Notes: generated by a model from the letters alone, not told the origin. Numbered from the stretch's first letter, positions 4,292 through 56,646 are shown. The stretch: DNA of 64,000 bases from Botryllus schlosseri (GCA_051294905.1 CM119373.1:33914001-33978000); one strand, 5' to 3'. Numbers and translations are program-made.

Positions 4292-5575
4292 TTACTTTGT
4301 GTCAAAATGGGCTCGCATGTGGTTCCTCAAACAGGAACTCCTGACGAATAACTTTCCGCATATTTCACACCCATAATCTTTTACGTTCAAATGGCTCTTC
4401 ATATGTTGCCTCAGAGAATGTTTTTGAACAAACGCTTGACCACACGTTTGACATTTGAAATCTTTTAGATCCAGATGGATACGCATATGCCGATTCAAAG
4501 AACATTTTTGGTTAAATGAAAGGTCGCATCTCCCACATTTAAAATCTTTCACGCCATAATGGATGAGCATGTGTCGCTGTAGGGATAGCTTTTGACTAAA
4601 ATATTTGCCACAGACTTCACACTCGAATTTCACAGCAAAATGGATGAGAGTGTGATTTTTTAAATACAGCAGTGTGGAGAACGATTTTCCACATGTCTCA
4701 CACTCATGTCTCTCATCGTTAGTGCGTGAATGGATGAGCAAGTGGTCAGCTAAACCTTCCCTTCGCTTGAACGATCTTCCGCATATTTCACACGAGAAAT
4801 TATTCACATCCAAATGGATCGCCATATGCTTTCGCAAACCATCTGTCCTCCTATGTATTGAGCCACATATGTCACACTTTAACTCTATACCATCAGTGTG
4901 CATCCTCGAATGATTTCTTAGAGACTGTTGATGCTGGAAAAGTTTACCGCATACTTGGCATTCAAAGCTTTTTACAGCAGAGTGGACGGACATATGTGAT
5001 TTCAAAGCTGTCTTTGAGCAGAGCAACATTGCGCAAATTTTGCACTCAACTTTTTTGATAGCGGATGCATTATGGACGATCTTTTTATGTTTTCTCAAAT
5101 CTTTCTTTGTGAAGAATGATCTTTCACAAATTTCACATTTGAAACTTTTCACGTCAAAATGGCGCAGCACGTGATTCTTCAAACCTCTCATTTCTTTTAG
5201 AACTTTGCCGCAAATTTCGCATGTAAAATTTTTTGTACTCGAATGGAACTGCATGTGCTTTTTGAGATCATCTCTTTGTCCGAAGGGCAAATGACATGTT
5301 CGACAGATCACAGTTTCCGTAGCAGAATGAAGCAGTAGGTGCTGACTCAAATTCCATTCAGAGGACAATGATTTGAAACAAATTTCACATTTGAAAGGCT
5401 TTACGCCAGCATGGGTCAGCAAGTGCTGACCTGAACTGGATTCATGCGCTAAGGATTTAAAATAAATTTCACATTTGAGAGGCTTCACCGCACGAGTGTG
5501 AATCAGCAAGTGAATTTTCAGATGACTCTTTGTGCTGTAAAATCGACCACAAACGTCACACTCGTGGTATGGCAT
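4292..5575 (-). CDS. Poly-C2H2 zinc-finger protein Z1 (15 fingers, F2 degenerate)
   Basis: ORF 4292..5638; first ATG (MPYHEC) at 5575; tandem Cx2C...Hx3H fingers, no effector domain visible. Confidence 0.9.
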   Translation of the reverse strand: MPYHECDVCGRFYSTKSHLKIHLLIHTRAVKPLKCEIYFKSLAHESSSGQHLLTHAGVKPFKCEICFKSLSSEWNLSQHLLLHSATETVICRTCHLPFGQRDDLKKHMQFHSSTKNFTCEICGKVLKEMRGLKNHVLRHFDVKSFKCEICERSFFTKKDLRKHKKIVHNASAIKKVECKICAMLLCSKTALKSHMSVHSAVKSFECQVCGKLFQHQQSLRNHSRMHTDGIELKCDICGSIHRRTDGLRKHMAIHLDVNNFSCEICGRSFKRREGLADHLLIHSRTNDERHECETCGKSFSTLLYLKNHTLIHFAVKFECEVCGKYFSQKLSLQRHMLIHYGVKDFKCGRCDLSFNQKCSLNRHMRIHLDLKDFKCQTCGQAFVQKHSLRQHMKSHLNVKDYGCEICGKLFVRSSCLRNHMRAHFDTK

Positions 5576-5822
5576 GGAATGGCGGAATGAATAAACAGGG
5601 TTCCTTGTGACCAGCTTCCGCGAGTAATAACTTGACACAAATTTAACAAAGCGTGTTCAACTGCGCTCTATGATGAACTTGCTGCGTGTCTTGTAACTAA
5701 AACTAGCCCAAATCGTCCCAATGCTCAAATCAGTCCGAGTTTGAAAATTCAAGGTAGTGATGAACGATGATAGAAGCAGAGCTGCCACAGAGGTATCAAT
5801 CTATAAATTTCAATGCATCAAT

Positions 5823-5920
5823 CTGAAAAAGTAAGCAGGACTATTATTAAATCAGTGTAAATATAGCTTGTGGGAACTGACTACAGCCATGATCAAATGA
5901 TGTTCATATTTACCGCTTAC
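5823..5920 (-). other. Putative 5'UTR intron of Z1 (98 bp)
   Basis: GTAAGC donor and CTTACTTTTTCAG acceptor; GT/AG kept at the same positions in five ZNF copies. Confidence 0.6.
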
Positions 5921-6027
5921 ATGCTGACACAACACAACAATATTTCTTTTTGAATTGACTGCTAAAAGAGCAGTGTGTCCGTCACATTTCTTTGAACTCG
6001 TCAAAAAATGATTAAAACACGTTAAGG

Positions 6028-6544: not shown

Positions 6545-6657
6545 GCCTAGATCATGGGACGACGTAAAATCTTAGTTTCTAGTTCCACTTTAACTGACAC
6601 CTCTTGAAAAACACAACTGCTTGTGCAGAAAGAATACTACAAAGACCTCATGCATCA

Positions 6658-11727: not shown

Positions 11728-12840
11728 TCAAAGTTCCTTCGTGTCAAAATGGACCTGCATGTGGTTCCTCAAACAAGAACTCCTGACAAATAACCTGCCG
11801 CAGATTTCACACCCAAAATCTTTCACGTCCAAATGGCTCTTGATATGTTGCCTCAGAGAATGTTTTTGAACAAACACTTGACCACACGTTTCGCACTTGA
11901 AATCTTTCATATTCAGATGGATACGCATATGCCTATTCAGAGAACACTTTTGGTTAAATGAAAGGTCGCATCGCTCGCATTTAAAAGATTTCACGCCATA
12001 ATGGATGAGCATGTGCCGCTGTAGGGATTGCTTTTGACTAAAACGTTTGCCACAGATTTCACACTCGAATTTCACATCAAAATGGATGAGAGTGTGTTTT
12101 GCCAGATACAGCAGGGTGGTGAACGATTTTCCACATGTCTCACACTCATGTCTCTCATCTTTAGTATGCGAATGGATGAGTATGTGGCGCGCTAAATCCG
12201 GTCCTCGCTTGAACGATTTGCCGCATATTTCACACGAAAAATTGTTCACATCCAAATGGATCGCCATATGTCTTTCCAAACTACTCTCCATGCTATATAA
12301 TGAGCCACATATTTCACATTTGAACTTTATACCATCAGTGTGCATCCTTGAATGACTTCTCAGACAATCTTTCTGTCGGAAAGGTTTACCGCATACTTGG
12401 CATTCAAAGTTTTTGGCAGAGTGGATGAGCATATGTGATTCCAAAGTCGTCTTTGAGCAGACTAATTTAGCGCAAATTTCGCACATGTATTTTTTGATAC
12501 TGGTAACGGTATGGACTTTCCTATGATTTCTCAAATCTTTCTTTGTGAAGAATGATCTTTCACAAATTTCACATTTGAAACCTTTCATGTCAAAATGGCG
12601 CAGCACGTGATTCTTCAAACCTCTCATTTCTTTTAGAATTTTGCCGCAAATTTCGCACGTGAAATTTTTAGTGCTGGAATGGAACTGTTTGTGCTTTTTC
12701 AGATCATCTCTTTGTCCGAAGGGCAGAGCACAAGTTCGACAGGTCACAGTTTCTGCAGCAGTATGGAGCAGTAGGTGATAAGTCAAATTCCATTTAGAGG
12801 ACAATGATTTGAAACAAAGGCCACATTGGAAAGGCTTCAT
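11728..12840 (-). CDS. Poly-C2H2 zinc-finger protein Z2 (13 fingers, N-terminally shortened)
   Basis: Intact 370-aa ORF from ATG (MKPFQC); decayed fingers upstream. Confidence 0.88.
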   Translation of the reverse strand: MKPFQCGLCFKSLSSKWNLTYHLLLHTAAETVTCRTCALPFGQRDDLKKHKQFHSSTKNFTCEICGKILKEMRGLKNHVLRHFDMKGFKCEICERSFFTKKDLRNHRKVHTVTSIKKYMCEICAKLVCSKTTLESHMLIHSAKNFECQVCGKPFRQKDCLRSHSRMHTDGIKFKCEICGSLYSMESSLERHMAIHLDVNNFSCEICGKSFKRGPDLARHILIHSHTKDERHECETCGKSFTTLLYLAKHTLIHFDVKFECEICGKRFSQKQSLQRHMLIHYGVKSFKCERCDLSFNQKCSLNRHMRIHLNMKDFKCETCGQVFVQKHSLRQHIKSHLDVKDFGCEICGRLFVRSSCLRNHMQVHFDTKEL

Positions 12841-13754: not shown

Positions 13755-15407
13755 TCACAAGATGATTGCCGAAGCATGGATTCTATTGTTCAGATATTCC
13801 AGGTCATCACTATGGAAGTCTATCAACGTACTCAACAAATGAGTTTTCGGATTGAACTCGAGGATATCATCGCAGAGCATTTCATCATTGTATCCACCAC
13901 ATATGTATATCTTACCGAGAATACAATGAGTTTTGAAATCCATTCGCTTCAATCCGGGTTTTTGAACTGGAATTAACGTCCACATACTTTCAGCACTGGG
14001 TAGCCAAAGAATGTCGGTTGCACACATACTGTTCGCAGTTTTTCCGCCAAGAAAGTAGATGTCCTTATTCAATGTACATGCACTTGCATGAGTTCTCGCA
14101 ACTGGCAATGATGGTCCATGTGACCAAGTGGATGCTGAAAAGTTGAAACATTCCACATCCAGCAGAAATTTAGATGAATATACATCAAAACCACCAATTG
14201 CGTAAAGCTTATCCCTAGCTATAGTGTAGGCAGACGCAACCACAATGGATTGCTTGTTAGGAAGCTTCGACCACTTGTTATTGATTGTGTCATATTGGAC
14301 CAAAAAAGACTCGGTCCATTTATGACCTGATAAATAAAATTTCCCTGATTTACGTGCAACTACTTCACCGTATCGGTATTCTGGTAATGGACGTTCAAGT
14401 TTTATCCAGGGTGAATCATATTCAAGAAAATTACGACGGTAGAAATCAGAATTGGTATAAATGACATATATGTAGCAGTCCATCACAACTATCGCGTTAA
14501 ATCGTGTCATAGTATCTTTATAATTGAAATGCCGCTGCTCGGTCAAAGACTTTCTGTCAATGTCAAACCACATAAAACGTCCTTGTCCATTCGTCATTAT
14601 AATGCCCGGAGTGCAGTCACCTTTGTAATCACTCGTTTCTACATCTGATTTCTCCGGTAGTGACTTCATGATGTACATCATGCATTCGGTGGATTTGCCA
14701 ACAGTTGGGTGCTGAGATAAAAATTTACGATAGTAGACGGGTATTTCTTCCAGGTCGATGTGCTTCAGTAAATCAAAAAGTTGATCGGCGCGATCCAAGT
14801 CCTCATTAACCCAAATCATTGACGCTTTGCATTTAATAACATCCAACACATGCAAATCTTCAGAGGAAATCAAATCCTCCAGGAGATCGAACTCAAGTTC
14901 CTTGAAATAGGATGTTTTCATGATCGAATGAAAGTGATCGCGAGCAAAACTTCGGCATGCTTGCTGTAATTGCTGACAGAAATACTTCTCAGCAATATAC
15001 CGGGTATCGAAAAACGAGTCTACGTCAAGATTTTCCTCCAGAAAAAGTGACATTGCATCGCATACTTTATCAATTCCAAACAAATGCGCAACATACATTA
15101 GTTTTTCTGTTTTTCGAATCAGAAATGACGCTTGTCCAGTGTACATGATATCAATGCAGGTCATCACACATTCAGGATCTACATACTTTAAATCAACCAT
15201 TCCCAACATGTTCTCTTTTGTGTCGTGATTGAGCATCTTAGCAAAATACTCAGAACTTGCGGCAATGACGCACTTGTGAACAGAGATTTCCTTTTCTCCC
15301 GCTTTGATAATGAAGTCGCAATACTGTTGATTGATTCTAAACTCGTCAAATTTCGAAAGAATATCAAGGGCATGACCCGTTTTGCCAATATCCAGAAGAT
15401 GCTCCAT
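13755..15407 (-). CDS. BTB-BACK-Kelch protein K3
   Basis: Intact ORF 13755..15410 (GTG), ATG at 15407; BTB, BACK, three GG-type Kelch blades. Confidence 0.92.
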   Translation of the reverse strand: MEHLLDIGKTGHALDILSKFDEFRINQQYCDFIIKAGEKEISVHKCVIAASSEYFAKMLNHDTKENMLGMVDLKYVDPECVMTCIDIMYTGQASFLIRKTEKLMYVAHLFGIDKVCDAMSLFLEENLDVDSFFDTRYIAEKYFCQQLQQACRSFARDHFHSIMKTSYFKELEFDLLEDLISSEDLHVLDVIKCKASMIWVNEDLDRADQLFDLLKHIDLEEIPVYYRKFLSQHPTVGKSTECMMYIMKSLPEKSDVETSDYKGDCTPGIIMTNGQGRFMWFDIDRKSLTEQRHFNYKDTMTRFNAIVVMDCYIYVIYTNSDFYRRNFLEYDSPWIKLERPLPEYRYGEVVARKSGKFYLSGHKWTESFLVQYDTINNKWSKLPNKQSIVVASAYTIARDKLYAIGGFDVYSSKFLLDVECFNFSASTWSHGPSLPVARTHASACTLNKDIYFLGGKTANSMCATDILWLPSAESMWTLIPVQKPGLKRMDFKTHCILGKIYICGGYNDEMLCDDILEFNPKTHLLSTLIDFHSDDLEYLNNRIHASAIIL

Positions 15408-16405
15408 CACAGTCGACTAGTTCCGAGTCAACTCAAAACATATAGCTAATTCAAAAACTTTGAGATAGGACACCTAAATCTGATTCTGAAAAATCATACA
15501 CATGGTCAGTACAGTCGTGTGCAAGGATGTGTTTGCTCATGAAGGCATACGAATATTGGTAAGTATCGAAATAGAAAATAGCGTGGATAGTATATTTAAA
15601 CAATACTTTCATCATTTTCCTTACAAATGAATATGAGAGAAAGTATACGCATATGTGGCAGCGAAAAACAATATCTCTAGGCTGTATGAATTTGAACACA
15701 AGTGATCGGGTCACGGTAGATACTATTAGTTGCACAAATGAAAACCTACAGAGCAATGCACGTTCTGTGTTTAGGTGAAATCTGAGAAAAGTCATTGCCT
15801 TGTTCTGCGGTATGAAATAAAATTCGGGAATACACAGTTGATCCAAAATAGAGAAACTTGGCATGAAATTTGGATAGCACAGATAAGAACAGCGGAACAC
15901 AATGACTCGAGTACTCAAATCATATTTGTGTATTAATTATAATGATTCGAGTCGAGTAGTAAGATAAAGTTCTTTCAAGTACTGAAATTACGAGTTCCTG
16001 GACACTATGAGTAATTTATGAGAGGGAATTATAGTTTTTTTTATTGGATGTGACATATCTGTGAAGCCATTATTTGGATCAACCCACACCATTGTCATAA
16101 AGTGCAATGAAACAGCGTTGCAACCATTGAGTCTCTGTAGCTGCCGATGTAAATATTGATAAAATGTCATAATAAATTTGAGCTATTTCTCTTTGTTTCA
16201 ATGCAGTACCATTTTGAATGGATTAAAACATCATATGCATAATGCAAGATATGTACATGAATATAAGCTAGGCTTATAGACAGCGATACAAGGTATGGAG
16301 AATGAGTCATACACACATTGTCACAAAACCAATCATAATGGGTAGAAAACAAGGGCAAATATCATGCTTTCTCGCAAGATGTGTGCAAAACCAGGGACTA
16401 GCAAT

Positions 16406-16992: not shown

Positions 16993-18720
16993 TCACAGGA
17001 TAATTGCTGCTGCATAATCCAAAGGCATCAGGTCCTGACCATCAAATTCTGACAACGTCCTTAACAAATTAGTTTTAGGATTAAATTCGAGAATACTAGA
17101 GCACGGGCCTAGTATGTATAGTAGTACACAGATGTATATCTTAGCGCCAATACAATAAGTCGAAAATTTTGATGGTTGCAAATTGGATAGTGGAATCTGC
17201 GTCCAAATACTTGCATCACTGGACAGCAACAGAATGTTTCTTTGATGCTCCGAGCTCCCGTTGCGTCCACCAAAAAGGTACACGGCTTTATTAAACGTAC
17301 ATGCAACTGCATTATATCTCAAATCAGGCAATGATGGCCCGGTTGACCAAGTGGATGTTGAAAAGTGAAAACATTCCACGTCTTGCAAAACCTTTCTCTT
17401 GCCATTGTCATGATATCCATCACAACCACCAATTACATAAAGCTTATCTTGAGAAATAGTGAAGGCGGATAAACGAGCGGTATATTGCTTGTTCGGAAGC
17501 TTTGACCAATGGTTATTGATTGTGTCATATTGAGCAAAAGAATTGGTTTCAAAAAAATTTGTTACATAAAATTTACCTGATTTACATGCAACTACAATGT
17601 CGTAATGTAGAAATGCACATTCAAGTTTTTTCCAGTGTGAACCATTTTCGAGAAAATTGAGGCTATACAAATCACACTTATGATCAATAACATATATACA
17701 GCATTCTACAACTACAGAACTTAATATGCTGCTATTATGTTTATAATTGAAATGTCGCAGGTCTGTCAAAGACTCTTTTTCAATGTCAAACCACATGAGA
17801 CATGAAAGATCAGAATTTATCATTAGAATGCCAGGATCACAGTCACCTCTGTAATCGCTGACCACTACATCTAACTTTTCAGGTACCGGTATAGACTTCA
17901 TGATGTGCATCACGCATTCGGGGGAATTGGCAACAGATGGTTGCTCTGATAAAAATTTGCGATAGGAGACGGGAATATTCTGCAGATTGATATGCTTCAG
18001 TAATTCAAAGAGTCTATCAGCCCAATGGAAGTCGTTGTTGACCCAAATCATCAAGGCTTTGCACTTGATCACATCCAACACATTCAAATCCTCAGAGGAA
18101 AGCATATACTTCAGGAATTCAAATTCAGATTCCTTGAAATCGGCCGTTTTCATGATCGAATGAAAGTTATTTTGAACAAAACATATGCATGCTTGCTGTA
18201 GTTGTCGACAGGAATATTTATCAGCAATATTTCTGGTATCGAAAAACATGTCCATGTCAAGATTATTTTCCAGAAAAAGTGACAATGCATCATATACGTT
18301 CTTGATCCCAAACAAATGCGCCACATCAATTAGTTTTTCCGTTTTTTCGATCATGAAAGAAGCCTGCCCAGTGTACATCATTTCAATGCATGTCATCACA
18401 CATTCAGGATCTGCATGCTTCATAGTAACCATTCCCAGCTGGTTCTCTTTCGTGTCATGATTGAGCATAGCTGCAAAATATTCAGAACTTGCGGCGATGA
18501 CGCACTTGTGGACAGCCGCCTCCTTCTCTCCCGCTTTGATAATGAAGTCACAATACTGCCGATTTATTCTGAACTCGTCAAATTTAGATAGAATGTCGAG
18601 GGCATGACCCGTCCTGTCAATATCCAGAAGATGTTCCATCACAGTTGACCAATTTATAGCCAAAATACACAGATCACTCAAAAACCTGCGAATAACATCT
18701 GTAACTGTAACATCATACAT
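16993..18720 (-). CDS. BTB-BACK-Kelch protein K4 (divergent)
   Basis: Intact 575-aa ORF; true ATG at 18720, family-typical ATG at 18639; last GG motif lost (YICVLL). Confidence 0.9.
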   Translation of the reverse strand: MYDVTVTDVIRRFLSDLCILAINWSTVMEHLLDIDRTGHALDILSKFDEFRINRQYCDFIIKAGEKEAAVHKCVIAASSEYFAAMLNHDTKENQLGMVTMKHADPECVMTCIEMMYTGQASFMIEKTEKLIDVAHLFGIKNVYDALSLFLENNLDMDMFFDTRNIADKYSCRQLQQACICFVQNNFHSIMKTADFKESEFEFLKYMLSSEDLNVLDVIKCKALMIWVNNDFHWADRLFELLKHINLQNIPVSYRKFLSEQPSVANSPECVMHIMKSIPVPEKLDVVVSDYRGDCDPGILMINSDLSCLMWFDIEKESLTDLRHFNYKHNSSILSSVVVECCIYVIDHKCDLYSLNFLENGSHWKKLECAFLHYDIVVACKSGKFYVTNFFETNSFAQYDTINNHWSKLPNKQYTARLSAFTISQDKLYVIGGCDGYHDNGKRKVLQDVECFHFSTSTWSTGPSLPDLRYNAVACTFNKAVYLFGGRNGSSEHQRNILLLSSDASIWTQIPLSNLQPSKFSTYCIGAKIYICVLLYILGPCSSILEFNPKTNLLRTLSEFDGQDLMPLDYAAAIIL

Positions 18721-21208: not shown

Positions 21209-22491
21209 TTACTTTGTGTTAAAATGGACCTGCATGTGGTTCCTCAAACAGGAACTTCTGACGAATAACTTGCCGCATATTTCACACCCATAATCTTTCA
21301 CGTTCAAATGGCTCTTCATATGTCGCTTCAGAGAATGTTTTTGAACGAACGCTTGACCACACGTTTGGCATTTGAAATTTTTTATATCCAGATGAATACG
21401 CATATGCCGATTCAAAGAACATTTTTGGTTAAATGAAAGATCGCATCTCTCACATTTAAAATCGTTCAAGCCATAATGGATGAACATGTGTCGCTGTAGG
21501 GATAGCTTTTGACTAAAATATTTGCCACAAACTTCACACTCGAAATTCACACCAAAATGGATGAGAGTGTGATTTTTCAAATACAGCAGTGTGGAGAACG
21601 ATTTTCCACATGTCTCACACTCATGTCTCTCATCGTTAGTGCGTGAATGGATGAGCAAGTTGTGTGCTAAACTTGCCTTCGCTTGAACGATTTGCCACAT
21701 ATTTCACACGAGAAATTATTCACATCCAAATGGATTGCCATATGCTTTCGCAAACCATCTTTCCTCCTATGTAATGAGCCACATATGTCACACTTTACCT
21801 CTATACCATCAGTGTGCATCCTCGAATGATTTCTTAGAGACTGTTGATGCTGGAAAAGTTTACCGCATACTTGGCATTCAAAGCTTTTTACAGCAGAGTG
21901 GACGGACATATGTGATTTCAAAGCTGTCTTTGAGTAGAACAACATTGCGCAAATTTTGCACTCAACTTTTTTGATAGCGGTTGCATTATGGACGATCTTA
22001 TTATGTTTTCTCAAATCTTTCTTTGTGAAGAATGATCTTTCACAAATTTCACATTTGAAACTTTTAACGTCAAAATGGCGCAGCACGTGATTCTTCAAAC
22101 CTCTCATTTCTTTTAGAATTTTGCCGCAAATTTCGCATGTAAAATTTTTTGTACTCGAATGGGACTGCATGTGCTTCTCGAGATCATCTCTCTGTCCGAA
22201 GGGCAAATGACATGTTCGACAGGTCACAGTTTCGGTAGCAGAATAAAGCAGTATGTGCTGACTCAAATTCCATTCAGAGGACAATGCTTTGAAGCAAACT
22301 TCACATTTGAAATGCTTTACGCCAGCATGGGTCAGCAAGTGCTGACTTGAACTGGATTTATGCGCCAAGGATTTAAGATAAAGTTCACATTTGAAAGGCT
22401 TCACTGCACGAGTGTGAATCAGCAAGTGAATTTTCAGATGACTCTTTGTGCTGTAAAATCGACCACAAACGTCACACTCGTAGTATGGCAT
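21209..22491 (-). pseudogene. Poly-C2H2 ZNF Z3, frameshift in finger 10
   Basis: ORFs 21667..22491 and 21209..21700; 1 bp shorter than Z1 at ~21685 and His->Asn in the same finger. Confidence 0.85.
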
Positions 22492-34120: not shown

Positions 34121-35774
34121 TCACAAGATGATTGCTGATGCATGGATTCTATTGTTCAGATATTCCGGGTCATGACTATGGAAGTCTATCAACGTACTCA
34201 ACAAATTAGTTTTTGGATTGAACTCGAGGATATCATCGCAGAGCATTTCATCATTGTATCCACCACATATGTACATCTTTCCGAGAATACAATGAGTTTT
34301 GAAATCCATTCGCTTCCATCAAGGCTTTTGAACTGGAATTATCGTCCACATACATTCATCACTGGGTAGCAAAAGAATGTCGGTTGCATACATACAGTTC
34401 ACAGTTTTTCCGCCAAGAAGGTAGATGTCCTTATTGAATGTACATGCACTTGCATGATTTCTCTGAACTGGCAATGATGGTCCATGTGACCAAGTAGATG
34501 CTGAGAAGTTAAAACACTCCACATCCAGCACAAATTTTGATGAGAATATATCAAAACCACCAATTGCGTAAAGCTTAACCATAGATATAGTGAAGGCAGA
34601 CGAATCCACAATGGATTGCTTGTTAGGAAGCTTCGACCACTTGTTATTGATTGTGTCATATTGGGACAAAGACTCGATCCCATTATCACTTGCTAAATAA
34701 AATTTCCCTGATTTACGTGCAACTACTTCACCGTATCGAAATTCTGGTAATGGACGTTCAAGTTTTATCCAGGGTGAATCATATTCAAGAAGATTACGAC
34801 GGTACAAATCAGAATTATTATCAATGACATATATGTAGCAGTCCATCACAACTATTGCGTTAAATCGTGTCATACTATCTTTATAATTGAAATGCCGCTG
34901 CTCGGTCAAAGACTTTCTGTCCATGTCAAACCACATAAAACGTTTAACTTTTCCATTCGTCATTATAATGGCAGGAGTGCAGTCACCTTTGTAATCACTG
35001 GCTTCTACATCTGATCTCGCAGGTAGTGACTTCATGATGTGCATCATGCATTCGGTGGATTTGGCAACAGTTGGTTGCTGAGAAAAAAAATTTACGATAG
35101 GAGACGGGGATTTTTTCCAGGTCGATGTGCTTCAGTAAATCAAAAAGTTGATCGGCACGATCTAAGTCGTCATTGACCCAAATCATTGACGCTTTGCATT
35201 TAATAATATCCAACACATGCAAATCTTCTAAGGAAATTAAATCCTCCAGGAAATCAAACTCAAGTTCCTTGAAATAGGATGTTTTCATGATCGAATGAAA
35301 GTGATCGCAAGCAAAACTCCTGGATGCTTGCTGTAATTGCTGACAGAAATACTTCTCAGCAATATACCTCGTATCGAAAAACGAGACTATGTCCAGATTT
35401 TCCACCAGAAAAAGTGACATTGCATCGCATACTTTATCAAGTCCAAATAATTGCGCCACATACATTAGTTTTTCCGTATTTCGAATCAGAAACGAGGCTT
35501 GTCCAGTGTACATGATTTCAATACAGGTCATCACACATTCAGGATCTACATGCTTCAAATCAACCATTCCCAACATGTTCTCTTTTGTGTCGTGATTGAG
35601 CATCTTAGCAAAATACTCAGAACTTGCGGCAATGACGCACTTGTGAACGGAGGTCTTTTTTTCTCCCGCTTTGATAACGAAGTCACAATACTGATGATTG
35701 ATTCTGAACTCGTCAAATTTCGATAGAATGTCGAGGGCATGACCCGACTTGCCAATACTCAGAAGATGTTTCAT
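34121..35774 (-). pseudogene. BTB-BACK-Kelch K6, frameshift plus nonsense codon
   Basis: +1 in A-run at 35083-35090; in-frame TGA at 34319-34321 (GGA in K3/K11). Confidence 0.85.
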
Positions 35775-37790: not shown

Positions 37791-39005
37791 TTATTTTGTA
37801 TGAAAATGGATGTGCATGTGGTTTTTCAAAGAAGTTCTACGGTTGAACGACTTCCCGCATATTTCACACTCAAAATCTTTCACACCAAGATGGATTTTCA
37901 TGTGTTGCTTCAGAGAATTCTTCTGGACGAAAGCATAACCACATGTTTTGCACTTGAAATTTTTAATATTCAAATGGATCAGCATATGTCGATTCAACGA
38001 ACACTTTTGGTTGAACGATTTGCCACATCCTTCACACTTGAAATCTTTTACACCGGAATGGATGATCGAGTGGCGTTCCAAGGGCGCATTGTGAGAGAAT
38101 GATTTCCCGCATATTGTACACGGAAAATTTTTCGCACATACATGGACAGTACGAGTGTGTAGTTCCAAAGATTCCATTGTGCTGTACAATTTGCCGCATA
38201 TCATGCACTCGTAATCACAGAAATGAATGAGCATGTGTTTTTTTAAAATCTCGTCTCGTTTGAATGATTTTCCACATACTTCACAAGTGACTTTTTTGAC
38301 TTTTTTAACATTGAGATGGAGTAGTATATGATGGTTTCGGGCATCAAGTCGGTGAAATGATAAGTTGCATATCTTGCAGTGGAATTTTTTCACATCGGTG
38401 TGTGTCAGCCTATGCAGTCTTAAATTGCGTGGATTGCAGAAAGTCTTGCCACAAACATCACACTCGAATCGTTTTATGGCCAAGTGGATTCGCATATGTG
38501 CCCTCAATGTTGCTTTCGTGCAGAAGGATTTTGCACAAATTTCACACTCACGATTTCTCCCGCAAATATGGCTGGTCATATGTACTTTTAGTACTTTCTT
38601 CGTCTGGAATGATTTTCCACAAATTTCACATTTTATATTTTTCACGCTAAAATGGCTCATAATGTGGCATCTCAGGCTTCTCTTTGTCATCAATACTTTG
38701 CCGCAAAGTTCACACGTAAACTTTTTCGTACCGTAATGGAACAGCATATGTTTTCCGAAATCAACACTTTGCCTGAAGGACAATCCGCAAGTTTCACAGA
38801 TGTAAGCGTCTACGCCGGAATGAATTAGCAGATGTTCTGTCAAATCACTGTTTTCGGTAAAGGATTCACCACAAACTTCACACTTGTGGCATCTCACAGT
38901 TGAATGAATCAGTAGATGTTCTTCGAAAGCAAACTTTCCGTGGAACAATTCACCACAAACTTGACAAGGCATCTCTAAGCGCTCTGCGTCTTCAGCTTGT
39001 TGCAT
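37791..39005 (-). CDS. Poly-C2H2 zinc-finger protein Z5 (14 fingers, most divergent)
   Basis: Intact 404-aa ORF from ATG; shares QKCSLNRH finger and HFxTK end with the other copies. Confidence 0.9.
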   Translation of the reverse strand: MQQAEDAERLEMPCQVCGELFHGKFAFEEHLLIHSTVRCHKCEVCGESFTENSDLTEHLLIHSGVDAYICETCGLSFRQSVDFGKHMLFHYGTKKFTCELCGKVLMTKRSLRCHIMSHFSVKNIKCEICGKSFQTKKVLKVHMTSHICGRNRECEICAKSFCTKATLRAHMRIHLAIKRFECDVCGKTFCNPRNLRLHRLTHTDVKKFHCKICNLSFHRLDARNHHILLHLNVKKVKKVTCEVCGKSFKRDEILKKHMLIHFCDYECMICGKLYSTMESLELHTRTVHVCAKNFPCTICGKSFSHNAPLERHSIIHSGVKDFKCEGCGKSFNQKCSLNRHMLIHLNIKNFKCKTCGYAFVQKNSLKQHMKIHLGVKDFECEICGKSFNRRTSLKNHMHIHFHTK

Positions 39006-44149: not shown

Positions 44150-44388
44150 TTACTTTGTGTTAAAATGGACCTGCATGTGGTTCCTCGAACAGGAACTTCT
44201 GACGAATAACTTGCCGCATATTTCACACCCATAATCTTTCACGTTCAAATGGCTCTTGATATGTTGCCTCGGGGAATGTTTTTGAACGAACGCTTGACCA
44301 CACTTTCGACATATGAAATCTTTCATATCCAGATGAATACGCATATGCCGATTCAAAGAACATTTTTGGTTAAATGAAAGGTTGCATC
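44150..44388 (-). pseudogene. ZNF Z6, last three fingers only
   Basis: CNLSFNQKCSLNRH...HFNTK; joined out of frame to K9 BACK sequence at ~44388. Confidence 0.8.
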
Positions 44389-44783: not shown

Positions 44784-46669
44784 CACAGTCGACTAGTTCC
44801 GAGTCAACCCAAAATATGTAGCTAATTCTAAAACTTTGAGATAGGACACCAAATTCCGATTCTGAAAAATCATACACATGGTCAGTACAGTCGTGTGCAA
44901 GAACGAGTTTGGTCTTGAAGGTATACGAATATTGGCCAGAATCGAAATTGAAAATAGCTTGGACAGTATATTTCAACAATACTTTCATCATTTTCCTTAC
45001 AATTGAATACGAGAGAAAGTATATTCAAAGATGTCAGCGGAAAACAATATCTTAAGGCTTTATAAATTTGAACATGAGTGATCGGGTCACGGTAGATACT
45101 ATTAGTTGCACAAATGAAAACCTACAGAGCAATGCACATTCTGTGATTGATGAAATCTAAGAAATGTCAATGCCTTGTTGTGCGGTATGTAATAAAATTC
45201 AGGAATACACAGTTGATCCAAAATAGAGAAATTTGAATAAAATTTGGCTAGCACTGAAAATAACGGCTGAACACAATGATTGGAGTACTCAAATCGTAAT
45301 CGAGTATTAATTATATTGATTTGAGTCGAGTTGAAGATAAAATTGCTTCCGGCACTGAAATTACGTGTTCCTAGCCCCTATGAGTAATTTATCAGCAGGA
45401 ATTATAGTTTTAATAGTGGATGTGAGATATTTATGAAGTCACGATCATGATCAACTCACACCACTGCCAAAAAGTGCAATGAAACAGGCATGGTAGAAAA
45501 ATACCGTCTTTGATGTGATGTAGAGCTGGCATTGTATTTTTGCAGTCGCAAGAAATGTACATATTTCAATTTTTCACGTCATTCATACTGCTGTGATATA
45601 ATTATCAATGATACTTGAATACTCGACTCAGCGCCTGATGCTCGATTCAGAATGACAGGCGCTCGATTCAGAATGGGATCATTCAAGGACTAAATTTCGC
45701 TCAGCCATACTGACCAGGTATGTGACGGTACGAGAAATGCAAAAACGCTACAACGAAATCAATCCTAAATCATAAATGCAGTACTCAAGGCCATCATTAG
45801 TTCTTGTTTGCAAACAGCTGAATTTTAGGAGAAGCCAGCAAAAAAGGAATCCAAACCCACGTACTGCAAGATCAGCGATGTAACCGATCATTTGCTGTGG
45901 CGAACGAAACAAATATTGAAAACCTTCCGGACATTTAATCTGAGCTTTTGGTATGTTTGTTCATACAGAGTAACATTTTGATGGGCTCAAAATATCACGC
46001 GAGTCCAAAACTACCAAATCAAGAGTAATGCGAAATGAAGGGTTAAATAGTTAAAATCATATGGGCTTACGGATAGTGAATCAAAGAATGGAGGAAGAGC
46101 CATCCACACCAGTTTACAAAATCACAGATAACGGACGGAAAACTGAAGGCAGGAGCCATGCTTTCTCGCAAGTTGTATACAAAATCAGGGGCAAGCTATA
46201 TGCAAAATCACGAATTTTAGAATTTGATCCGTTAACGTTTTGTGGCGTTACAAGATAATTGCCTCTGCATAGAATTCATGCATATTCAAGTCATGGCTAT
46301 TCAAGTCCATCACAGTCCTCAACAAATTAGTTTTGGGATTGAACTCGAGGATACTTTTGCAGCGACTCGGCATCATTTCACCATGGGATCCATCACATAC
46401 GTATATCTTTCCGCCAATGCAATAAGTACTTAAATTTGAACCCTCCAATTCGGGTCCTTGTACTGGAATTATCGTCCAAATACTTTCATCACTGGGTAGC
46501 AGAAAAATGTCGTTGACATACTTATAGTTCACAGTTCTTCCACCAACAAGGTAGATGGCCTTATTATATGAACATGCACTTGCCATAGCTCTCTCAACGG
46601 GTAATGATGGTCCAACTGTCCAAGTAGACGTTGAAAAGTTGAAACATTCCACATCCAGCGCAAAGGTTG

Positions 46670-46976
46670 TGTCATCTCCAAGTAGAGACTTATGAAGAAT
46701 GTGATTGGAGTAGGCTGACTCTGGATCTCCTCTCTCAACTGGTACGAAACAAGAACTCCAAATGGACGAATATCTTATTAAAATACCGTTGAAAAATTGC
46801 TGGTAATATCCTGGTAAGACCAAATACTCCAGTAAATAAACAATAAATGAACAGACCAACAACAACAAAACAAAGCTGGCTACTTTCACCACGTCGCTCA
46901 CGAAATGAGTGCACGTGCGCTCCAAAGCAGTCCAAGTGGTGAGTGAGCCATAGAGAAAATAATATCCACCGTGACA
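46670..46976 (-). repeat. 3' LTR (307 bp)
   Basis: Direct repeat of 49722..50028; 3 differences by eye. Confidence 0.93.
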
Positions 46977-47199
46977 TAGCCGGCCCTGTGACGAACTGTA
47001 AACTGCCAAAGCAATTACATGGAGTCACAATAACTGATGAGCGGTGGTAATGAATGTTAACAAAATGTAAAAATACACAGGGTGGTTGTACGAATATGAA
47101 CTTACGAATATTATGTTCGTAGGTTCTACTTACAGTACAAAACCTGACTCTCCTGACCAAGCCATTACAGTCACGAAGCATGATTAGGATACAATAAAG

Positions 47200-47640
47200 G
47201 GTTGCCTTATCGACATAAGTACGTCGCAGGCAATTATTATGCGAACACAAAATTGTGCAATATCAGGAGCACAAGTGTCTCCAAAGATGTGAGAAGTCAT
47301 CTAAGTCAGATCTGCTGCCCATGGACATTCAAGTATTCAAAATCGACATAATGCCCCAATGAGCGATGAATTAGAAGTGAATTGACAATTAGGATTAGTA
47401 AAATTGACATTAAATGCAGAAGAAATAGTGTCTCATGACATTTTCAACAATAACAGAAGTCTTGTTATTGCAATCAAGGAAATTAACCTCAGTGGAATAC
47501 ACCTAATTTGTTCGAAGGGTTTTGTCACAACCCATAAAAGAGTGGCCAAGTTATCATGAAGTAACTGCTGACTTCGTAATCCAGGTAACACATAAGAACT
47601 TGTTACCAATAATACAGTAAAAATCATTTACATCAACAAT
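47200..47640 (-). pseudogene. Decayed pol (RT) remnant
   Basis: MTSHIFGDTCAPDIAQFCVR resembles BEL RT HLFGAxSSP; RRTYVDK is a degenerate YVDD; stops and frameshifts. Confidence 0.6.
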
Positions 47641-47785
47641 TGGGTGGACATTGGACACGTCCTTCAGGTATCATTGTGCATAATGTGCATGTGCATTGTG
47701 CAACAATGTCTGCGCTTGGGGGTAGATTTTCAATCACAGGAAAGTGACAAGTAGCTAATACATCATTCAAGTTGATGCCTGTGCT

Positions 47786-49684
47786 TTACCCGATTCCTTT
47801 AACGGATATGGGCACAAATTTAGGCTGGCGGGGAAGGATGGCAGCGGTATTCATTAAATAAGTCAGCGGTTCACCACTGATAACCAATTGGTTTAGGAAA
47901 AAGAAAGTACACAGGCAGTTGGTAGCCCCAGTGATAAGGAATGCACATGTAATAAAACCGGTAGAAGCTACCAGACAGGTGATTATCACAAAAGGTGTAG
48001 ACAGATGTGTCACCAGACAACTTATCTCGGCAATTGCAGGAGATAGAGCCGTAACCGTGTTGTTCTCAGCAACAACAATCGATTTAGGATATAACGAACA
48101 TTTGTATGCGTCATGTAATAAAGTGCTTTGAGCACAGCCACATCCATGAATTTTCCAATGACATGTGGATGGGTAATAATTGGGATCATGATCACAGAAT
48201 AAGCAATTACGGCGTAACAGACTCTCTTCTGCGGATCCATGACGCTGCTGAACTTGCATCTTTTGGATGTCTTCAAAGTTGAAGAGAGGATGAAGATCTT
48301 GACACAGGATACATGATGAACGTAGCTCCTTTTCAGCGACATATCGATGCATCGAGCTTGAATCCATAGATGTAGTATTCACCTCTATTGCAGTTTTGCG
48401 CGGATTCTTTGAGTACTTCTTGTGCGGTACGCTTAGATCAACATCTTTGGGTTCAAGTGAACAATAAAATTCATTGTTGACCGGACCAAATGGTGACCGA
48501 GTCAATGCTGTTTTCTTCTTGACAAATTCAACGAAATCGTTGGAATTTGGATTAACACTGGCTTCATCCTGGTGACTTCGAGGGAATGAAGGTGTAACAG
48601 GGTATTGAGCAGAATGTAGCAACTCACTATTGTTAGTGGTAACAGTTGCAGAGTTCGTAGAACTATCAATGGACATTTCACAAGTGTGAAAGCCTCGATT
48701 AAATTTGGTCGCATCAGCCGGCCCATTACGGGTGGCCGAGTAGTGAATATCAGAGGAAATTTTTTGTGGCACAGCTGGCCCATTATAGGCTTCTGAGTAA
48801 CGGAAACTGAATGGCGAATCTTGTTGCACAGCCGGCCCATTACAGGGGACTGAGAATCGGTAACATGATGAAATAACTGGTTTCACAGCCGACCCATTAC
48901 AGGGGGCTGAGAATTGGAAATTTGATGTCTTGTCTGACAACGAACATTCTTCAACGCAAGTAGGGCAAGTTGCGAAAGTTTGACATTGCGTGGGAATGGC
49001 CAGAGTATTGAGAAAGTCTTCTGTGAGTGGTTTATCATTATTAGCATTGCCAACTGGCAGTCCTTTGTTGAGAGTGTCATTACTATCCAAGCCGCAGCAA
49101 CCTTTATGACTGGTCACAGAAGCTAATGATCCAAATTGTGACGAAACAATTGCTTTATACCGTTCAAGTTTTGACTGAGCACTGAAAAGTTTCCATTCCA
49201 ACCTTTTCAAATTGTCTTTCTCATGCGTCCACAATGTCTGTAAGTCGTCAAGTGACGTACTTACACTTTCAGAAGTAATAAGTTTACGGAATTTGCCATC
49301 AGCAATATTCTTTGTATATAGACACAGGTCATGAAATGACGAAATACTGTCCAATATTGATTGGGCATCGACACTGCCCTCGGTTATCTTGTCTTTGATA
49401 CCGGTAGTAAGATTGTTCAACTGGGTATTGACTCGATGAAATGTCTCGTCAAGACTGTCTTTTGCAGCCAGAACAGTTCGGGGAGTAGCTCCACTCAAAC
49501 ATTTAGTAAAGTAGGCATCGGCAGCGTGGAAGTCCCTTGCTAGACCGGCCAAAATATTGTCAGTGACTTGCATATCGAAGCCTCTGACTGTAATCGCCTT
49601 ATAGGCATTAGGGTCTCTTCTTGGACCAAAAGTAATAAGATTGACTTGCGTATCGAAGTCTTTTACTGTAGATGGAGGATCCAT
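47786..49684 (-). CDS. gag: BEL/Pao Gag-like protein
   Basis: ORF 47786..49705, first ATG 49684; CILCQDLH...CLFC...C...CGCAQSTLLH knuckle cluster typical of BEL/Pao. Confidence 0.78.
   Translation of the reverse strand: MDPPSTVKDFDTQVNLITFGPRRDPNAYKAITVRGFDMQVTDNILAGLARDFHAADAYFTKCLSGATPRTVLAAKDSLDETFHRVNTQLNNLTTGIKDKITEGSVDAQSILDSISSFHDLCLYTKNIADGKFRKLITSESVSTSLDDLQTLWTHEKDNLKRLEWKLFSAQSKLERYKAIVSSQFGSLASVTSHKGCCGLDSNDTLNKGLPVGNANNDKPLTEDFLNTLAIPTQCQTFATCPTCVEECSLSDKTSNFQFSAPCNGSAVKPVISSCYRFSVPCNGPAVQQDSPFSFRYSEAYNGPAVPQKISSDIHYSATRNGPADATKFNRGFHTCEMSIDSSTNSATVTTNNSELLHSAQYPVTPSFPRSHQDEASVNPNSNDFVEFVKKKTALTRSPFGPVNNEFYCSLEPKDVDLSVPHKKYSKNPRKTAIEVNTTSMDSSSMHRYVAEKELRSSCILCQDLHPLFNFEDIQKMQVQQRHGSAEESLLRRNCLFCDHDPNYYPSTCHWKIHGCGCAQSTLLHDAYKCSLYPKSIVVAENNTVTALSPAIAEISCLVTHLSTPFVIITCLVASTGFITCAFLITGATNCLCTFFFLNQLVISGEPLTYLMNTAAILPRQPKFVPISVKGIG
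48715..48930 (-). repeat. 4 x 57-bp (19-aa) tandem repeat inside gag
   Basis: CAGCCGGCCCATTA-like units at 48715, 48772, 48829, 48886 (SAPCNGSAV, SVPCNGPAV, SEAYNGPAV, SATRNGPAD). Confidence 0.85.
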
Positions 49685-49721
49685 AACGAAGTTAATGGAA
49701 TACACTCAATTTTTCAACCTT

Positions 49722-50028
49722 TGTCGTCTCCAAGTAGAGACTTATGAAGAATGTGATTGGAGTAGGCTGACTCTGGATCTCCTCTCTCAACTGGTACGAA
49801 ACAAGAACTCCAAATGGACGAATATCTTATTAAAATACCGTTGAAAAATTGCTGGTAATATCCTGGTAAGACCAAATACTCCAGTAAATAAACAATAAAT
49901 GAACAGACCAACAACAACAAAACAAAGCTGGCTACATTCACCACGTCGCCCACGAAATGAGTGCACGTGCGCTCCAAAGCAGTCCAAGTGGTGAGTGAGC
50001 CATAGAGAAAATAATATCCACCGTGACA
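49722..50028 (-). repeat. 5' LTR (307 bp)
   Basis: Direct repeat of 46670..46976. Confidence 0.93.
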
Positions 50029-51353
50029 GGTTGTATGATATGCATCAAAACCACCAATTACATGAAGTTTATCCTGAGATATAGTGTAGGCAGACAAACA
50101 CAATCTGGATTGCTTGTTGGGAAGCTTCGACCACTTGTTATTGATTGTGTCATATTGGGCCAAAGACTCAAGATATGAAAAATATAATATACCGGGCTTA
50201 CGTGCAACTACAGTGTTGTATCCAAGAAATGCAGGTTCAAGTTTTCTCCAGGGTGAATCATTTTCAAGAAAATTACGACAGTACAAATCCCACTTTTCAT
50301 CAACGACATATATGTAGCAGTCCATCACAACTACCACGAGAAATGGCCTCAAACTAACTTCAGCATTGAAATGTCGCTGCTCTGTCAAAGACTCTCTGTC
50401 CATGTCAAACCACATAAGACGAGAAACATCCTCATTCACTATTATAATATTCGGAGTACAGTCACCTTTGTAATCACTGGCTTCTACATCTGACTTCTCC
50501 GGTAGTGACTTCACGATGTGCATCATGCATTCGGTGGATTTAGCAACAGTTGGTTGCTGAGATAAAAATTTACGATAGTAGACAGGGATTTTCTCCAGGT
50601 CGATATACTTCAGTAATTCAAAAAGTTGATCAGCGCGATCCAGATCCTCATTCACCCAAATCAATGACGCTTTGCACTTAATAACATCCAACACATGCAA
50701 ATCTTCAGAGGATATCAAATGCTCGAGGAAATCGAACTCAAGTTCCTTGAAATCAGCAGTTTTCATGATCGAATGAAAGTGATCACGAGCAAAACTTCTG
50801 CATGCTTGCTGTAATTGTTGACAGGAATATTTATCGGCAATACTTCTGGTGTCGAAAAACGAGTCCACGTCAAGATTTTGATCCAAGAAAAGCGACATTG
50901 CATCGCATACCTTATTAATTCCAAACAAATGCGCCACATACATTAGTTTTTCCGTTTTTCTAATCAGAAAAGACGCTTGTCCCCGGTACATGATTTCAAT
51001 GCAGGTCATCACACATTCAGGATCTACTTGCTTTAAATCAACCATTCCCAACATGTTCTCTTTTGTGTCGTGATTGAGCATCTTAGCAAAATACTCAGAA
51101 CTTGCGGCAATGACGCACTTGTGAACAGAGATCTCCTTTTCTCCCACTTTTATAATGAAGTCGCAATACTCTGTTGATTGATTCTGAACTCATCAAATTT
51201 CGATAGAAGGTCGAGGGCATGGCCCGACTTGCCAATATCCAGAAGATGTTCCATCACAGTTGACTAGTTTATAGCCAAAATATATACCTCACTCGAAAAC
51301 TTTAGAATAATATCCGTAGCCTAACTGTAACATCATACACAAGGTGAGATTAG

Positions 51354-53943: not shown

Positions 53944-54393
53944 CAGGGTCGTGATGAATCGAGTCGCAAATTTCCGTTAACTGGACTTGACTCTTGAGTC
54001 ATTTTATGTATAGACTCGACTTTTACTACAGTCATTGTGAATGACTCGAACAAGTTATAAGACAAGAGACTTTATATTTGAATTGATTCAAATCTCGTGT
54101 AACAGGAACGATACCAGAAAAATAAGCCAAGATCAATTGCTTCGTACGTTTCATTAGACGTGTTAAGACTTGATAAAAATGAGTTTCTTTTGAATTGGGG
54201 CCTTCGATATCACCGAGGAGCTTCTAAAAAGGTGAGTTGAACCGGATTGAACTCTATAGACTATGACTCTACTCGACCATAATTTCTTTGATCTGGACTA
54301 AGACTTGACCCGGTGGCGAGTTTTAAATGACTCGACTTCACTCGAGTAAAATCTCTAAAAGTAATATTGACTTGTGACTTGGCTACAACCCTA
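53944..54393. mobile_element. hAT MITE, ancestral insertion copy 5
   Basis: Perfect TSD gacacaac/gacacaac. Confidence 0.78.
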
Positions 54394-55540
54394 GACACAA
54401 CACAGAGGAATTTTTAAAAATAGAATCCGTTGATATACAGTCGATTCCATGTGGTTATTATGACAATTTCACTCACAAATGTGGTGCAACTGTAAAACTA
54501 CGACAATACATAACTCACGGTGATCTGGTTTACGACATGAAGACAATGCCTTATCGGCATGGTCGAAAAAGAACATATTATCAATATGTACTGTTAAACT
54601 GCCCGTATGTTCTTAGTGGCTGAATTTGAGGTGCATATATCAACATTATCATGGTCATAGTTCTATGATGCAATATTAAGTGTTACTCGAATACACACAT
54701 TGGATTCGCAATCTATTACTCAGGTACTTGATTTTCCCAAGCTACACTAACAATCATAGAACGGATTTCAAATTTTTTAAGCATCAGTATAATACATGTA
54801 GGCATACATGGAACAAAAAGCGAGAAATACAGAAAGATAGTATGAAAATGCACAAGCAATATAAATTGACAGGCACATGTCGCTACAGAAATGACTTGAA
54901 CAATGACAAAACTGTCAATCCTAAATCAGCTGATAAAGACTAGGGGAAGATTGAGAACTGTGGTATAAAAAACAGCCTTGATGAAGGCCGGTATCGCGAA
55001 TAAGACGTTGCCAGCATTTATCAACTGACGTCATACTTGGTGAAACGATTGTTGATATACAATGTTATTTCCAATTCTCTACTAGTTGCTGAAGATTATC
55101 CCTGACGAGTGTCAGGCGTAAATATTCGGGTTCATTTCGATATGAATATACCATTTAATTGTATATTGAAGTTTTGTACCTCCAAGAAGCTCTTAAAAAC
55201 TGTTAAACTACGAAAATAACGAATTCACGGTGATCTGGTTTACGACATGAAGAAAATGCCTTACCTATAATACAGACCATAAGGCAAAACAATAAAGGAA
55301 CAAAATACAGAAATGTCGAGAATGTTAAGAGACATCCATCCTGTAAATTGCATGCAAGTTTGCACATTCCAAATGCGAAGTCAAGTATATGACCTGAAAA
55401 TATCATCCATAATATTTAATTCAGAAAAGCATGCAGATTCCCCATGACATGCCAATTCACACGACAATGAACGTCATGTAAGGTTTAATTCAGGTATATC
55501 GAAGTGTTAATAAAATAAAGTAATCGTTACATACTCAAAG

Positions 55541-56646
55541 TTACTTCATGTCAAAATGGACCTGCATGTGGTTCCTCAAACAAGAACTCCTGACAAATAA
55601 CCTGCCGCAGATTTCACACCCAAAATCTTTCACGTCCAAATGGCTCTTGATATGTTGCCTCAGAGAATGTTTTTGAACAAACGCTTGACCACACGTTTCG
55701 CACTTGAAATCTTTCATATTCAGATGGATACTCATATGCCTATTCAGAGAACACTTTTGGTTAATGAAATGTCGCATCGCTCGCATTTAAAAGCTTTCAC
55801 GTCATAATGGATGAGCATGTGTCGCCGTAGGGATTGCTTTTGACTAAAACGTTTGCCACAGATTTCACACTTGAATTTCACATCAAAATGGATGAGAGTG
55901 TGTTTTTCCAGATACAGCAGGGTGGTGAACGATTTTCCACATGTCTCACACTCATGTCTCTCATCTTTAGTATGCGAATGGATGAGTATGTGGCGCGCTA
56001 AATCCGGTCCTCGCTTGAAAGATATGCCGCATATTTCACACGAGAAATTGTTCACATCCAAATGGATCGCCATATGTCTTTCCAAACTACTCTCAATGCT
56101 ATATGATGAGCCACATATTTCACATTTGAACTCTATACCATCAGTGTGCATCCTCGAATGACTTCTCAGACAATCTTTCTGTCGAAAAAGTTTACCGCAT
56201 ACTTGGCATTCAAAGCTTTTGGCAGAGTGGATGAGCATATGTGATTCCAAAGTCGTCTTTGAGCAGACTAATTTAGCGCAAATTTCGCACTTGTATTATT
56301 TGATACTGGTAACGGTATGGACGTTCCTATGATTTCTCAAATCTTTCTTTGTGAAGAATGATCTTTCACAAATTTCACATTTGAAACCTTTCATGTCAAA
56401 ATGGCGCAGCACGTGATTCTTCAAACCTCTCATTTCTTTCAGAATTTTGCCGCAAATTTCGCACGTGAAATTTTTAGTGCTGGAATGGAACTGTATGTGC
56501 TTTTTCAGATCATCTCTTTGTCCGAAGGGCAGAGCACAAGTTCGACAGGTCACAGTTTCTGCAGCAGTATGGAGCAGTAGGTGATGAGTCAAATTCCATT
56601 TAGAGGACAATGATTTGAAACAAAGGCCACATTGGAAAGGCTTCAT
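55541..56646 (-). pseudogene. Poly-C2H2 ZNF Z7, nonsense codon plus frameshift
   Basis: AAA->TAA at 56296-98; 1-bp deletion at ~55765; close paralog of Z2; ATG (MKPFQC) at 56646. Confidence 0.87.

Follow-up and report, generated by a model that had tools for sequence, protein, structure and literature searches.

Constrained and variable recognition helices in a tandem family of zinc-finger genes paired with BTB-Kelch genes in Botryllus schlosseri

The recognition helix of a C2H2 zinc finger contacts DNA through its positions -1, 2, 3 and 6, and the zinc-finger (ZNF) gene clusters of animals are held in textbooks to evolve by diversifying these contact residues once tandem duplication has taken place. 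Emerson and Thomas 2009 (PMC2604467) established selection on contact residues following duplication in the poly-ZNF genes of human and other primates, and Wells et al. 2023 (PMC10547256) did so for the FiNZ-ZNF genes of zebrafish; the number of C2H2 genes is known to differ strongly among tunicates (PMC8122590). The present analysis concerns an array of poly-C2H2 genes in a window of 64,000 nucleotides of the genome of the ascidian Botryllus schlosseri (GCA_051294905.1 CM119373.1:33914001-33978000; positions given below are counted from the first nucleotide of the window), which appears to extend the same mode to a family whose open reading frames (ORFs) carry no effector domain.

Like the KRAB-ZNF clusters of tetrapods (PMC2604467), the array consists of tandem poly-C2H2 genes that have grown by segmental duplication and include many pseudogenes, with a fold under purifying selection and replacements focused on positions -1, 2, 3 and 6 after duplication; unlike those clusters, its ORFs contain no KRAB, SCAN or other effector domain, its linkers are not of the TGEKP type, and each of its duplication units includes a BTB-Kelch gene. 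Like the FiNZ genes of cyprinids (PMC10547256), it is a lineage-restricted ZNF expansion outside tetrapods; recent FiNZ in-paralogs give signals in the codon-site models M2a and M8 with a modest enrichment at base-contact positions, and the odds ratio for helix positions in the ascidian family is about 2. Unlike FiNZ, the ascidian family is small (about 22 members), no conserved N-terminal domain is seen in it, and its site-model signal is gone once recombination is allowed. Quick change focused at DNA-contact positions beside more stable fingers is also a property of PRDM9, but the ascidian ORFs have no PR/SET, KRAB or SSXRD domain according to Pfam, the variation lies between paralogs and not alleles, and, unlike the minisatellite fingers of PRDM9, the fingers within an array differ throughout, each position having a conserved sequence of its own. 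The evolutionary pattern of the family is a known one; what sets it apart is the lack of an effector domain, the odd linkers and the pairing with BTB-Kelch genes.

It is fairly probable that purifying selection has acted on the fold and on the recognition helices of fingers F4-F6 and F13-F15, and that fingers F8-F10 have been retargeted in bursts between the subtypes of the family. This reading is supported by what the data show: how the loci are built, that synonymous divergence is even among fingers, that the fixed helices are constrained, and that replacements are in excess on the branches between subtypes.

Constrained and free recognition helices

A six-frame scan of the window, which contains no runs of N, for the motif C-x2-C-x12-H-x3-5-H/C identified 82 C2H2 fingers, every one of them on the minus strand, that fall into seven loci (Z1 to Z7). 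As in Kruppel-type poly-C2H2 proteins, there are 12-15 fingers per locus with conserved F and L core residues, and the Pfam zf-C2H2 family is matched with E values of 1.9e-60 (Z1) and 2.6e-67 (Z5). The intact 15-finger ORF of Z4 (29656-30984, minus strand) served as the reference for codon numbering and for the codon alignment. When the whole assembly was searched with Z4, about 22 related loci were found, all at C3:33.80-34.08 Mb, a span of 280 kb on one chromosome; the remaining matches in the genome are at most 44% identical over full-length alignments. No close relative was found among 5.8 billion public proteins, where the best match (36% identical) reflects generic poly-ZNF similarity. 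The codon alignment on Z4 comprises 21 copies, including 15 loci outside the window (L001 to L015), and is unambiguous from F3 to the stop codon. The copies fall into subtype A (Z1, Z3, L003, L005, L007 and L009, with L001 and L012 as outliers), subtype B1 (Z2, Z7, L004, L006, L008 and L010), subtype B2 (Z4, L002 and L011), subtype C (L014 and L015) and a separate divergent pair (Z5 and L013).

A preliminary description of the window had noted hypervariable central fingers between near-invariant blocks, and all of the F8, F9 and F10 helices that it quoted (positions -1 to +6) were found exactly as written. Fingers F8, F9 and F10 read HQQSLRN, RTDGLRK and RREGLAD in Z1 (4730-4960); QKDCLRS, MESSLER and RGPDLAR in Z2 (12166-12402); HQQSLRN and RKDGLRK followed by a frameshifted F10 in Z3 (21646-21876); QKDCLRN, REGDLKR and RGSDLAR in Z4 (30088-30324); NPRNLRL, RLDARNH and RDEILKK in Z5 (38217-38462); and QKDCLRS, IESSLER and RGPDLAR in Z7 (55972-56208), all on the minus strand. 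The invariant helices were likewise as described: F13 is QKCSLNR in all seven loci, although in Z7 it is legible only behind a 1-bp deletion that places it out of frame with the upstream fingers, and the F5 (EMRGLKN) and F15 (RSSCLRN) helices do not vary among Z1-Z4 and Z7. These helices belong to two constrained three-finger blocks, also on the minus strand. The N-terminal block, F4-F6, reads QRDDLKK, EMRGLKN and TKKDLRK in Z1 (5072-5305), with matching blocks in Z2 (12511-12741), Z3 (21988-22221), Z4 (30433-30663) and Z7 (56317-56547); the C-terminal block, F13-F15, reads QKCSLNR, QKHSLRQ and RSSCLRN in Z1 (4307-4537), with matching blocks in Z2 (11749-11979), Z3 (21224-21454), Z4 (29671-29901), Z5 (37800-38036) and Z7 (55556-55786). 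In the 19 copies that can be aligned, the contact positions show a nonsynonymous divergence of 0.32-0.35 in F8-F10 versus 0.00-0.012 in F13-F15, and the contrast between variable and fixed helices exceeds chance. F8-F10 are variable as described, but the variable zone is wider than these central fingers, comprising F3 and F7-F12 when omega (the ratio of nonsynonymous to synonymous rates) is fitted by site class.

For these fits, separate synonymous and nonsynonymous rates were estimated for each site class with our own codon-likelihood code (GY94, F3x4), which matches IQ-TREE (lnL -5448.118, kappa 2.42, omega 0.50). Omega is 0.10 for the zinc ligands and hydrophobic core, 0.5 for the linkers and 0.42-0.44 for all non-helix positions; it is 0-0.47 for the helices of F4, F5, F6, F13, F14 and F15, and 0.8-1.8 for the helices of F3 and F7-F12, which overall evolve near the neutral rate.

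Invariance of this kind could also arise by gene conversion, if the copies homogenise the "invariant" fingers and the central fingers escape, in which case the pattern would not reflect functional selection. Some exchange is indeed visible: the trees of different segments conflict within subtype B, where L008, L010 and L011 switch partners between F3-F7 and F8-F10, and the pairs L004/L008 and L006/L010 each share a contact-residue state together with a synonymous state. However, the invariant fingers are as diverged synonymously as the others. Mean pairwise synonymous divergence (pS) per finger ranges from 0.11 to 0.33, with values for the invariant fingers (F4 0.32, F13 0.32, F15 0.29) as high as those for the variable ones (F8 0.19, F9 0.29, F10 0.27); the preliminary description had taken invariance matched at synonymous sites as the sign of gene conversion, and no such match is found. 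The helix of F15 has an omega of 0 at a synonymous rate 1.4-1.9 times the average (likelihood-ratio test statistic (LRT) 18.5, p 1.6e-5), and the QKCSLNR helix of F13 is retained even in Z5 and L013 despite several synonymous codon changes. Because synonymous divergence is comparable in all fingers, the invariant helices of F4-F6 and F13-F15 are a product of purifying selection, not of gene conversion, which is largely refuted as their explanation and must be considered extremely improbable. The split between fixed and free helices is real and is the product of selection. The Z5/L013 pair further combines a pS of 0.134 with a nonsynonymous divergence (pN) of 0.010 over the helices of F3 and F7-F12, and of 0 in the helices of F8-F10, which is a clear instance of purifying selection on a second, predicted specificity.

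Replacement of the F8-F10 helices between subtypes

Pairwise comparisons suggest that helix change has been episodic. Between Z1 and L008, which belong to different subtypes, helix pN is 0.49 versus a pS of 0.24 (p 0.0015), and some pairs within a subtype have kept their F8-F10 helices (pN 0.072 versus pS 0.172 for Z1/L012; 0.048 versus 0.070 for Z1/L009). Nucleotide differences between Z1 and Z2 amount to 48% in the helices, 22% in the non-coding flanks and 17% at third codon positions; the flank yardstick comes from Z1 and Z2 only, other 5' flanks being partly unalignable or recombinant (L008). Because the pairwise comparisons pointed to episodic change, a separate omega was allowed on the five subtype stem branches (B1, B2, B, C and B+C). 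On these stems omega is 3.46 at the F8-F10 helix positions (LRT 26.1, p 3e-7 versus 1) and 3.51 at the F8-F10 contact positions alone (p 2e-5), with single-finger values above 1 as well (F8 2.5, p 0.028; F9 4.4, p 2.5e-4; F10 3.7, p 3.6e-3); it is 0.04 for the constrained helices (below 1, p 3e-10) and 0.37 for non-helix sites (below 1, p 3e-20). The choice of this window of fingers was corrected for with 3000 neutral helix data sets simulated on the same tree, from each of which the best of all 11 three-finger windows was taken: the observed best-window statistic, which falls at F8-F10, is 12.8 versus a simulated maximum of 7.2 (P < 3.3e-4). When pseudogenes are excluded, leaving 11 intact genes, the stem omega is 3.23 (p 5e-7); the local tree of F8-F10, in which the helix changes themselves lengthen the branches, gives 1.94 (p 0.003), and 2.0 at contact positions (p 0.009).

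Several results weigh against retargeting of F8-F10 by selection, and part of them would be expected if constraint had merely been relaxed, such that the central helices of a partly decaying family drift neutrally and the excess on the stems is a post hoc, multi-nucleotide and recombination artefact. Over the whole tree, the contact positions of F8-F10 have an omega of 1.27-1.40, which does not clearly exceed 1 (p 0.05-0.16), and omega of the F8-F10 helices on non-stem branches is 0.77, which is not shown to be below 1. Other same-subtype pairs have a helix pN at or above pS (Z4/Z2, 0.173 versus 0.112; Z4/L008, 0.196 versus 0.138). Trees from F3-F7, F8-F10 and F11-F15 disagree inside subtype B, so recombination among the copies is real, and the codon-site models M1a/M2a and M7/M8/M8a, of which the M7/M8 comparison had been proposed in the preliminary description, are significant on a single tree (M2a LRT 12.3, p 0.002; M8 versus M8a p 2e-4; a class with an omega of about 1.5 takes in about 28% of sites) but lose their significance with segment-specific trees (M2a p 0.54; M8 versus M8a p 0.15), under which M2a adds nothing to a fit by M1a with about 42% of sites at an omega of 1. 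Standard site models are not robust here, since their significance depends on imposing a single tree on copies that recombine; M2a and M8 evidence for families of this type can arise wholly from recombination between paralogs, which calls for caution with similar claims. The enrichment of high-omega sites in helices is modest (odds ratio about 2; 3-5 for the F8-F10 helices). Branch-site model A gives marginal results (LRT 5.0, 3.7 and 3.0; p 0.025, 0.056 and 0.083), attributed to low power and not to contradiction because there are only one or two changes per site and about 40% of sites are already in the neutral class. Neither the F8-F10 helices as site class nor the stems as branch class had been fixed before the data were seen, and the calibration by simulation covers the choice of finger window only; many helix codons differ at two or three bases, and omega was computed with no term for multi-nucleotide mutation, a known inflator. 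Stops, frameshifts or insertions within F3-F15 disrupt ten of the 21 copies in the alignment, and Z6 is a mere fragment. None of the linkers in the array (FDMKGFK, LDVNNFS, SARSFE, SHAKDERHE and others) resembles the seven-residue TGEKP type, and most of the Z4 exon is devoid of reads in three bulk RNA-seq runs sampled at 6-13%, a weak negative.

Neutral drift, however, cannot yield a stem omega of 3.5 with such significance, nor a statistic beyond every one of the 3000 neutral best-window simulations, and the stem result survives both the restriction to intact genes and the local tree. The helix nucleotides have diverged twice as fast as the non-coding flanks, and some sister copies have kept their helices, as Z5 and L013 have at F8-F10 (pN 0 versus pS 0.134), which is unexpected under free drift. 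Relaxed constraint alone is a possible but rather unlikely explanation. Positive selection on the F8-F10 contacts, as first proposed, has support on the subtype stems (omega 3.5) and is not clear across the whole tree (1.3-1.4); it is supported, with caveats, solely as episodic bursts and by a test framed after the data had been seen.

The states of the helices form series of stepwise point changes, such as RESNLKR, REGDLKR, MESSLER and IESSLER in F9. A compensated frameshift in the F9 helix, suggested by CGAAAG in subtype A versus GAAAGA in B1, was rejected on account of the intermediates AAA AGA (C and B2) and CGA AGA (L012), which indicate point changes. Nor is an outside donor for micro-conversion seen, as the 33-nt F9 helix sequences of B1 and A match array members only in a genome search allowing at most three mismatches. 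When L004, L006, L008, L010, Z2 and Z7 were compared at F8 and at the +3 position of F9, the contact codon at F8 +2 was found in three states, GAT, AAT and GGT; AAT is common to L004 and L008, which also share a synonymous AGC in F9, and GGT is common to L006 and L010. Such shared codon states are better explained by distant copies having arisen by block duplication or having exchanged sequence than by parallel mutation.

The history of the family is best read as follows. The seven loci are part of a lineage-restricted, finger-only C2H2 family of about 22 that grew by tandem duplication of blocks with a BTB-Kelch gene; purifying selection has kept the structural positions in place, along with the helices of F4-F6 and F13-F15, and the helices of F3 and F7-F12 are free to vary. 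At each origin of subtypes A, B1, B2 and C, helix residues of F8-F10 were probably replaced in a burst above the synonymous rate, and some sister copies of one subtype have since retained their helices (Z5/L013, Z1/L012, Z1/L009). Each burst would have altered the predicted DNA subsite of F8-F10, about 9 bp long, and the fixed fingers may have maintained a contact common to all subtypes, with DNA or perhaps with protein or RNA; each subtype would thereby have gained a new target after duplication. Read in this manner, the array would be an unusually clean natural map, in which three regularly spaced fingers are retargeted and two three-finger blocks are frozen, and it predicts from sequence a composite binding site, one part of which is fixed and another variable.

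Expression, effector domains and transposable elements

Expression was checked for one copy, Z4, in the three bulk RNA-seq runs and in one contig set, over positions 29300-35299, and gained no support from them. X14 reads at 30500-30699 have a mean depth of 0.9/0.44 and carry base differences, such that they may stem from a paralog. No splice joint from the Z4 exon to upstream sequence or to the Kelch ORF was seen in the RNA reads. Between Z4 and its Kelch neighbour, RNA reads of both strands pile up at about 31100-31500, 31900-32100 and 33500-33700; the depth of the contig set reaches thousands there, and many reads continue into unlike sequence. These pile-ups look like high-copy interspersed repeats. 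Subtypes A and B share a conserved pyrimidine-rich tract that ends in CAG and precedes the likely ATG by about 170 nt (5640-5830 of the window, and the matching stretch ahead of each ZNF ORF); it could be a candidate splice acceptor for a 5' exon, and the RNA reads gave no joint there.

No repressor or other effector domain was found in the ZNF ORFs, for which Pfam gives zinc-finger families only. The genes do not resemble KRAB-ZNF genes, as Pfam finds no KRAB domain in the ORFs and the likely ATG lies directly before F1, though a separate upstream exon may exist; nor do they resemble ZBTB genes, as the BTB domain and the fingers are in separate ORFs with no reads joining them.

The preliminary description had envisaged a fixed anchor or protein-binding module coupled to a retargetable DNA-reading module aimed at transposable elements (TEs) invading the locus. 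The division into constrained and free helices and the bursts at F8-F10 on the stems bear out the first part of that proposal; the aim at TEs, and with it any link of the ZNF genes to TEs, has no support, the interspersed ORFs being BTB-Kelch genes and not TEs. Neither is the role of anchor borne out, and the fixed fingers may at most be supposed to serve as an anchor or protein-binding module.

An arms race, in which the changes at F8-F10 follow escape variants of TEs as in KRAB-ZNF and FiNZ-ZNF genes, is suggested by analogy only: in mammals and zebrafish, selection on the contacts of young tandem ZNF paralogs accompanies TE targeting (PMC2604467, PMC10547256). The window does contain at least one likely TE insertion, the ORF at 47786-49705 with weak Gag-like features. 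The lack of a repressor domain in the ORFs (Pfam) and the near absence of RNA reads on Z4 tell against an arms race, as does the identity of the supposed TE ORFs as BTB-Kelch genes; furthermore, the helices changed in a few old bursts since which some sister copies have kept them, not in continuous turnover. An arms race with TEs is improbable on this evidence.

A further proposal, highly doubtful at present, is that the ZNF proteins and the co-duplicated BTB-Kelch proteins form a two-part system, in which F4-F6 and F13-F15 would dock to a shared DNA site or to a Kelch/CUL3 adaptor and F8-F10 would pick a subtype-specific site. If true, ascidians would have in this system an equivalent of KRAB-ZNF/TRIM28, with ubiquitin ligation as its mode of action.

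Arrangement of the array and neighbouring genes

The other ZNF loci of the window, like Z4, are on the minus strand. Z1 (subtype A, 4292-5638) is an open ORF with a likely ATG just before F1 (MPYHEC) and an F2 without its second Cys. Z2 (subtype B1, 11728-12840) is a 13-finger ORF with an ATG just before F3, upstream of which lies a decayed remnant of F1-F2 with a stop in F2. Z3 (subtype A, 21209-22491) reads as two ORFs, since its F10 helix contains a 1-bp deletion. Z5 (37791-39005), of the divergent subtype, is intact with 14 fingers and about 51% identical to Z4; its sole close relative, L013, is 106 kb distant. The Z6 fragment (approximately 44165-44388) retains only the helix of F13 and fingers F14-F15, with P and S in place of the helix leucines of F14 and F15. 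Z7 (subtype B1, 55556-56763) is a pseudogene: its F6-F7 linker contains a TAA stop, and a 1-bp deletion immediately precedes its F13 helix. Fingers F1 and F2 have been lost in Z2 and Z7, both of subtype B1.

The spacing of fingers in Z4, from F1 to F15, is 29, 28, 28, 28, 28, 30, 27, 28, 28, 30, 27, 28, 28 and 28 residues, i.e., mostly 28, with 29, 30 or 27 at F1/2, F6/7, F7/8, F10/11 and F11/12. Consequently the three fingers F8-F10 are evenly spaced as a block, with an irregular junction on either side (30, 27, 28, 28, 30 and 27 from F6 to F12). The series 30, 27, 28, 28 occurs twice in Z4 (F6/7 to F9/10, then F10/11 to F13/14) and is the same in all copies; this doubling hints that F7-F10 and F11-F14 may derive from an old internal duplication of four fingers.

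Comparison of the window with itself revealed head-to-tail segmental duplicates of 6-7 kb with 88-92% identity, each containing one ZNF gene and one Kelch gene. The intervening ORFs of 515-577 aa encode BTB-BACK-Kelch proteins (Pfam), each in an ORF of its own whose stop codon precedes the ZNF ORF by about 1.1 kb. Kelch and ZNF genes do not alternate strictly: the BTB-Kelch ORF at 13755-15410 is followed by a second intact one at 16993-18720 (minus strand, 575 aa), and no ZNF gene separates the two. An insert carrying the 639-aa ORF at 47786-49705 divides another BTB-Kelch gene (46248-51147, minus strand) into the ORFs 49714-51147 and 46248-47009. The 639-aa ORF has no Pfam match; it is a likely TE insertion, its protein-atlas features weakly (scores of at most 0.84) resembling a Gag/DUF1759-like retroelement. 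A 384-aa ORF at 61985-63139 (plus strand), with no Pfam match at E of 0.01 or less, presumably resembles transposase-derived proteins of the hAT/ZBED type. Outside the window, the B1 copy L004 (G000:C3:33896000-33898900) carries a 393-bp insertion in the C-terminal part of F8, after Z4 codon 242.

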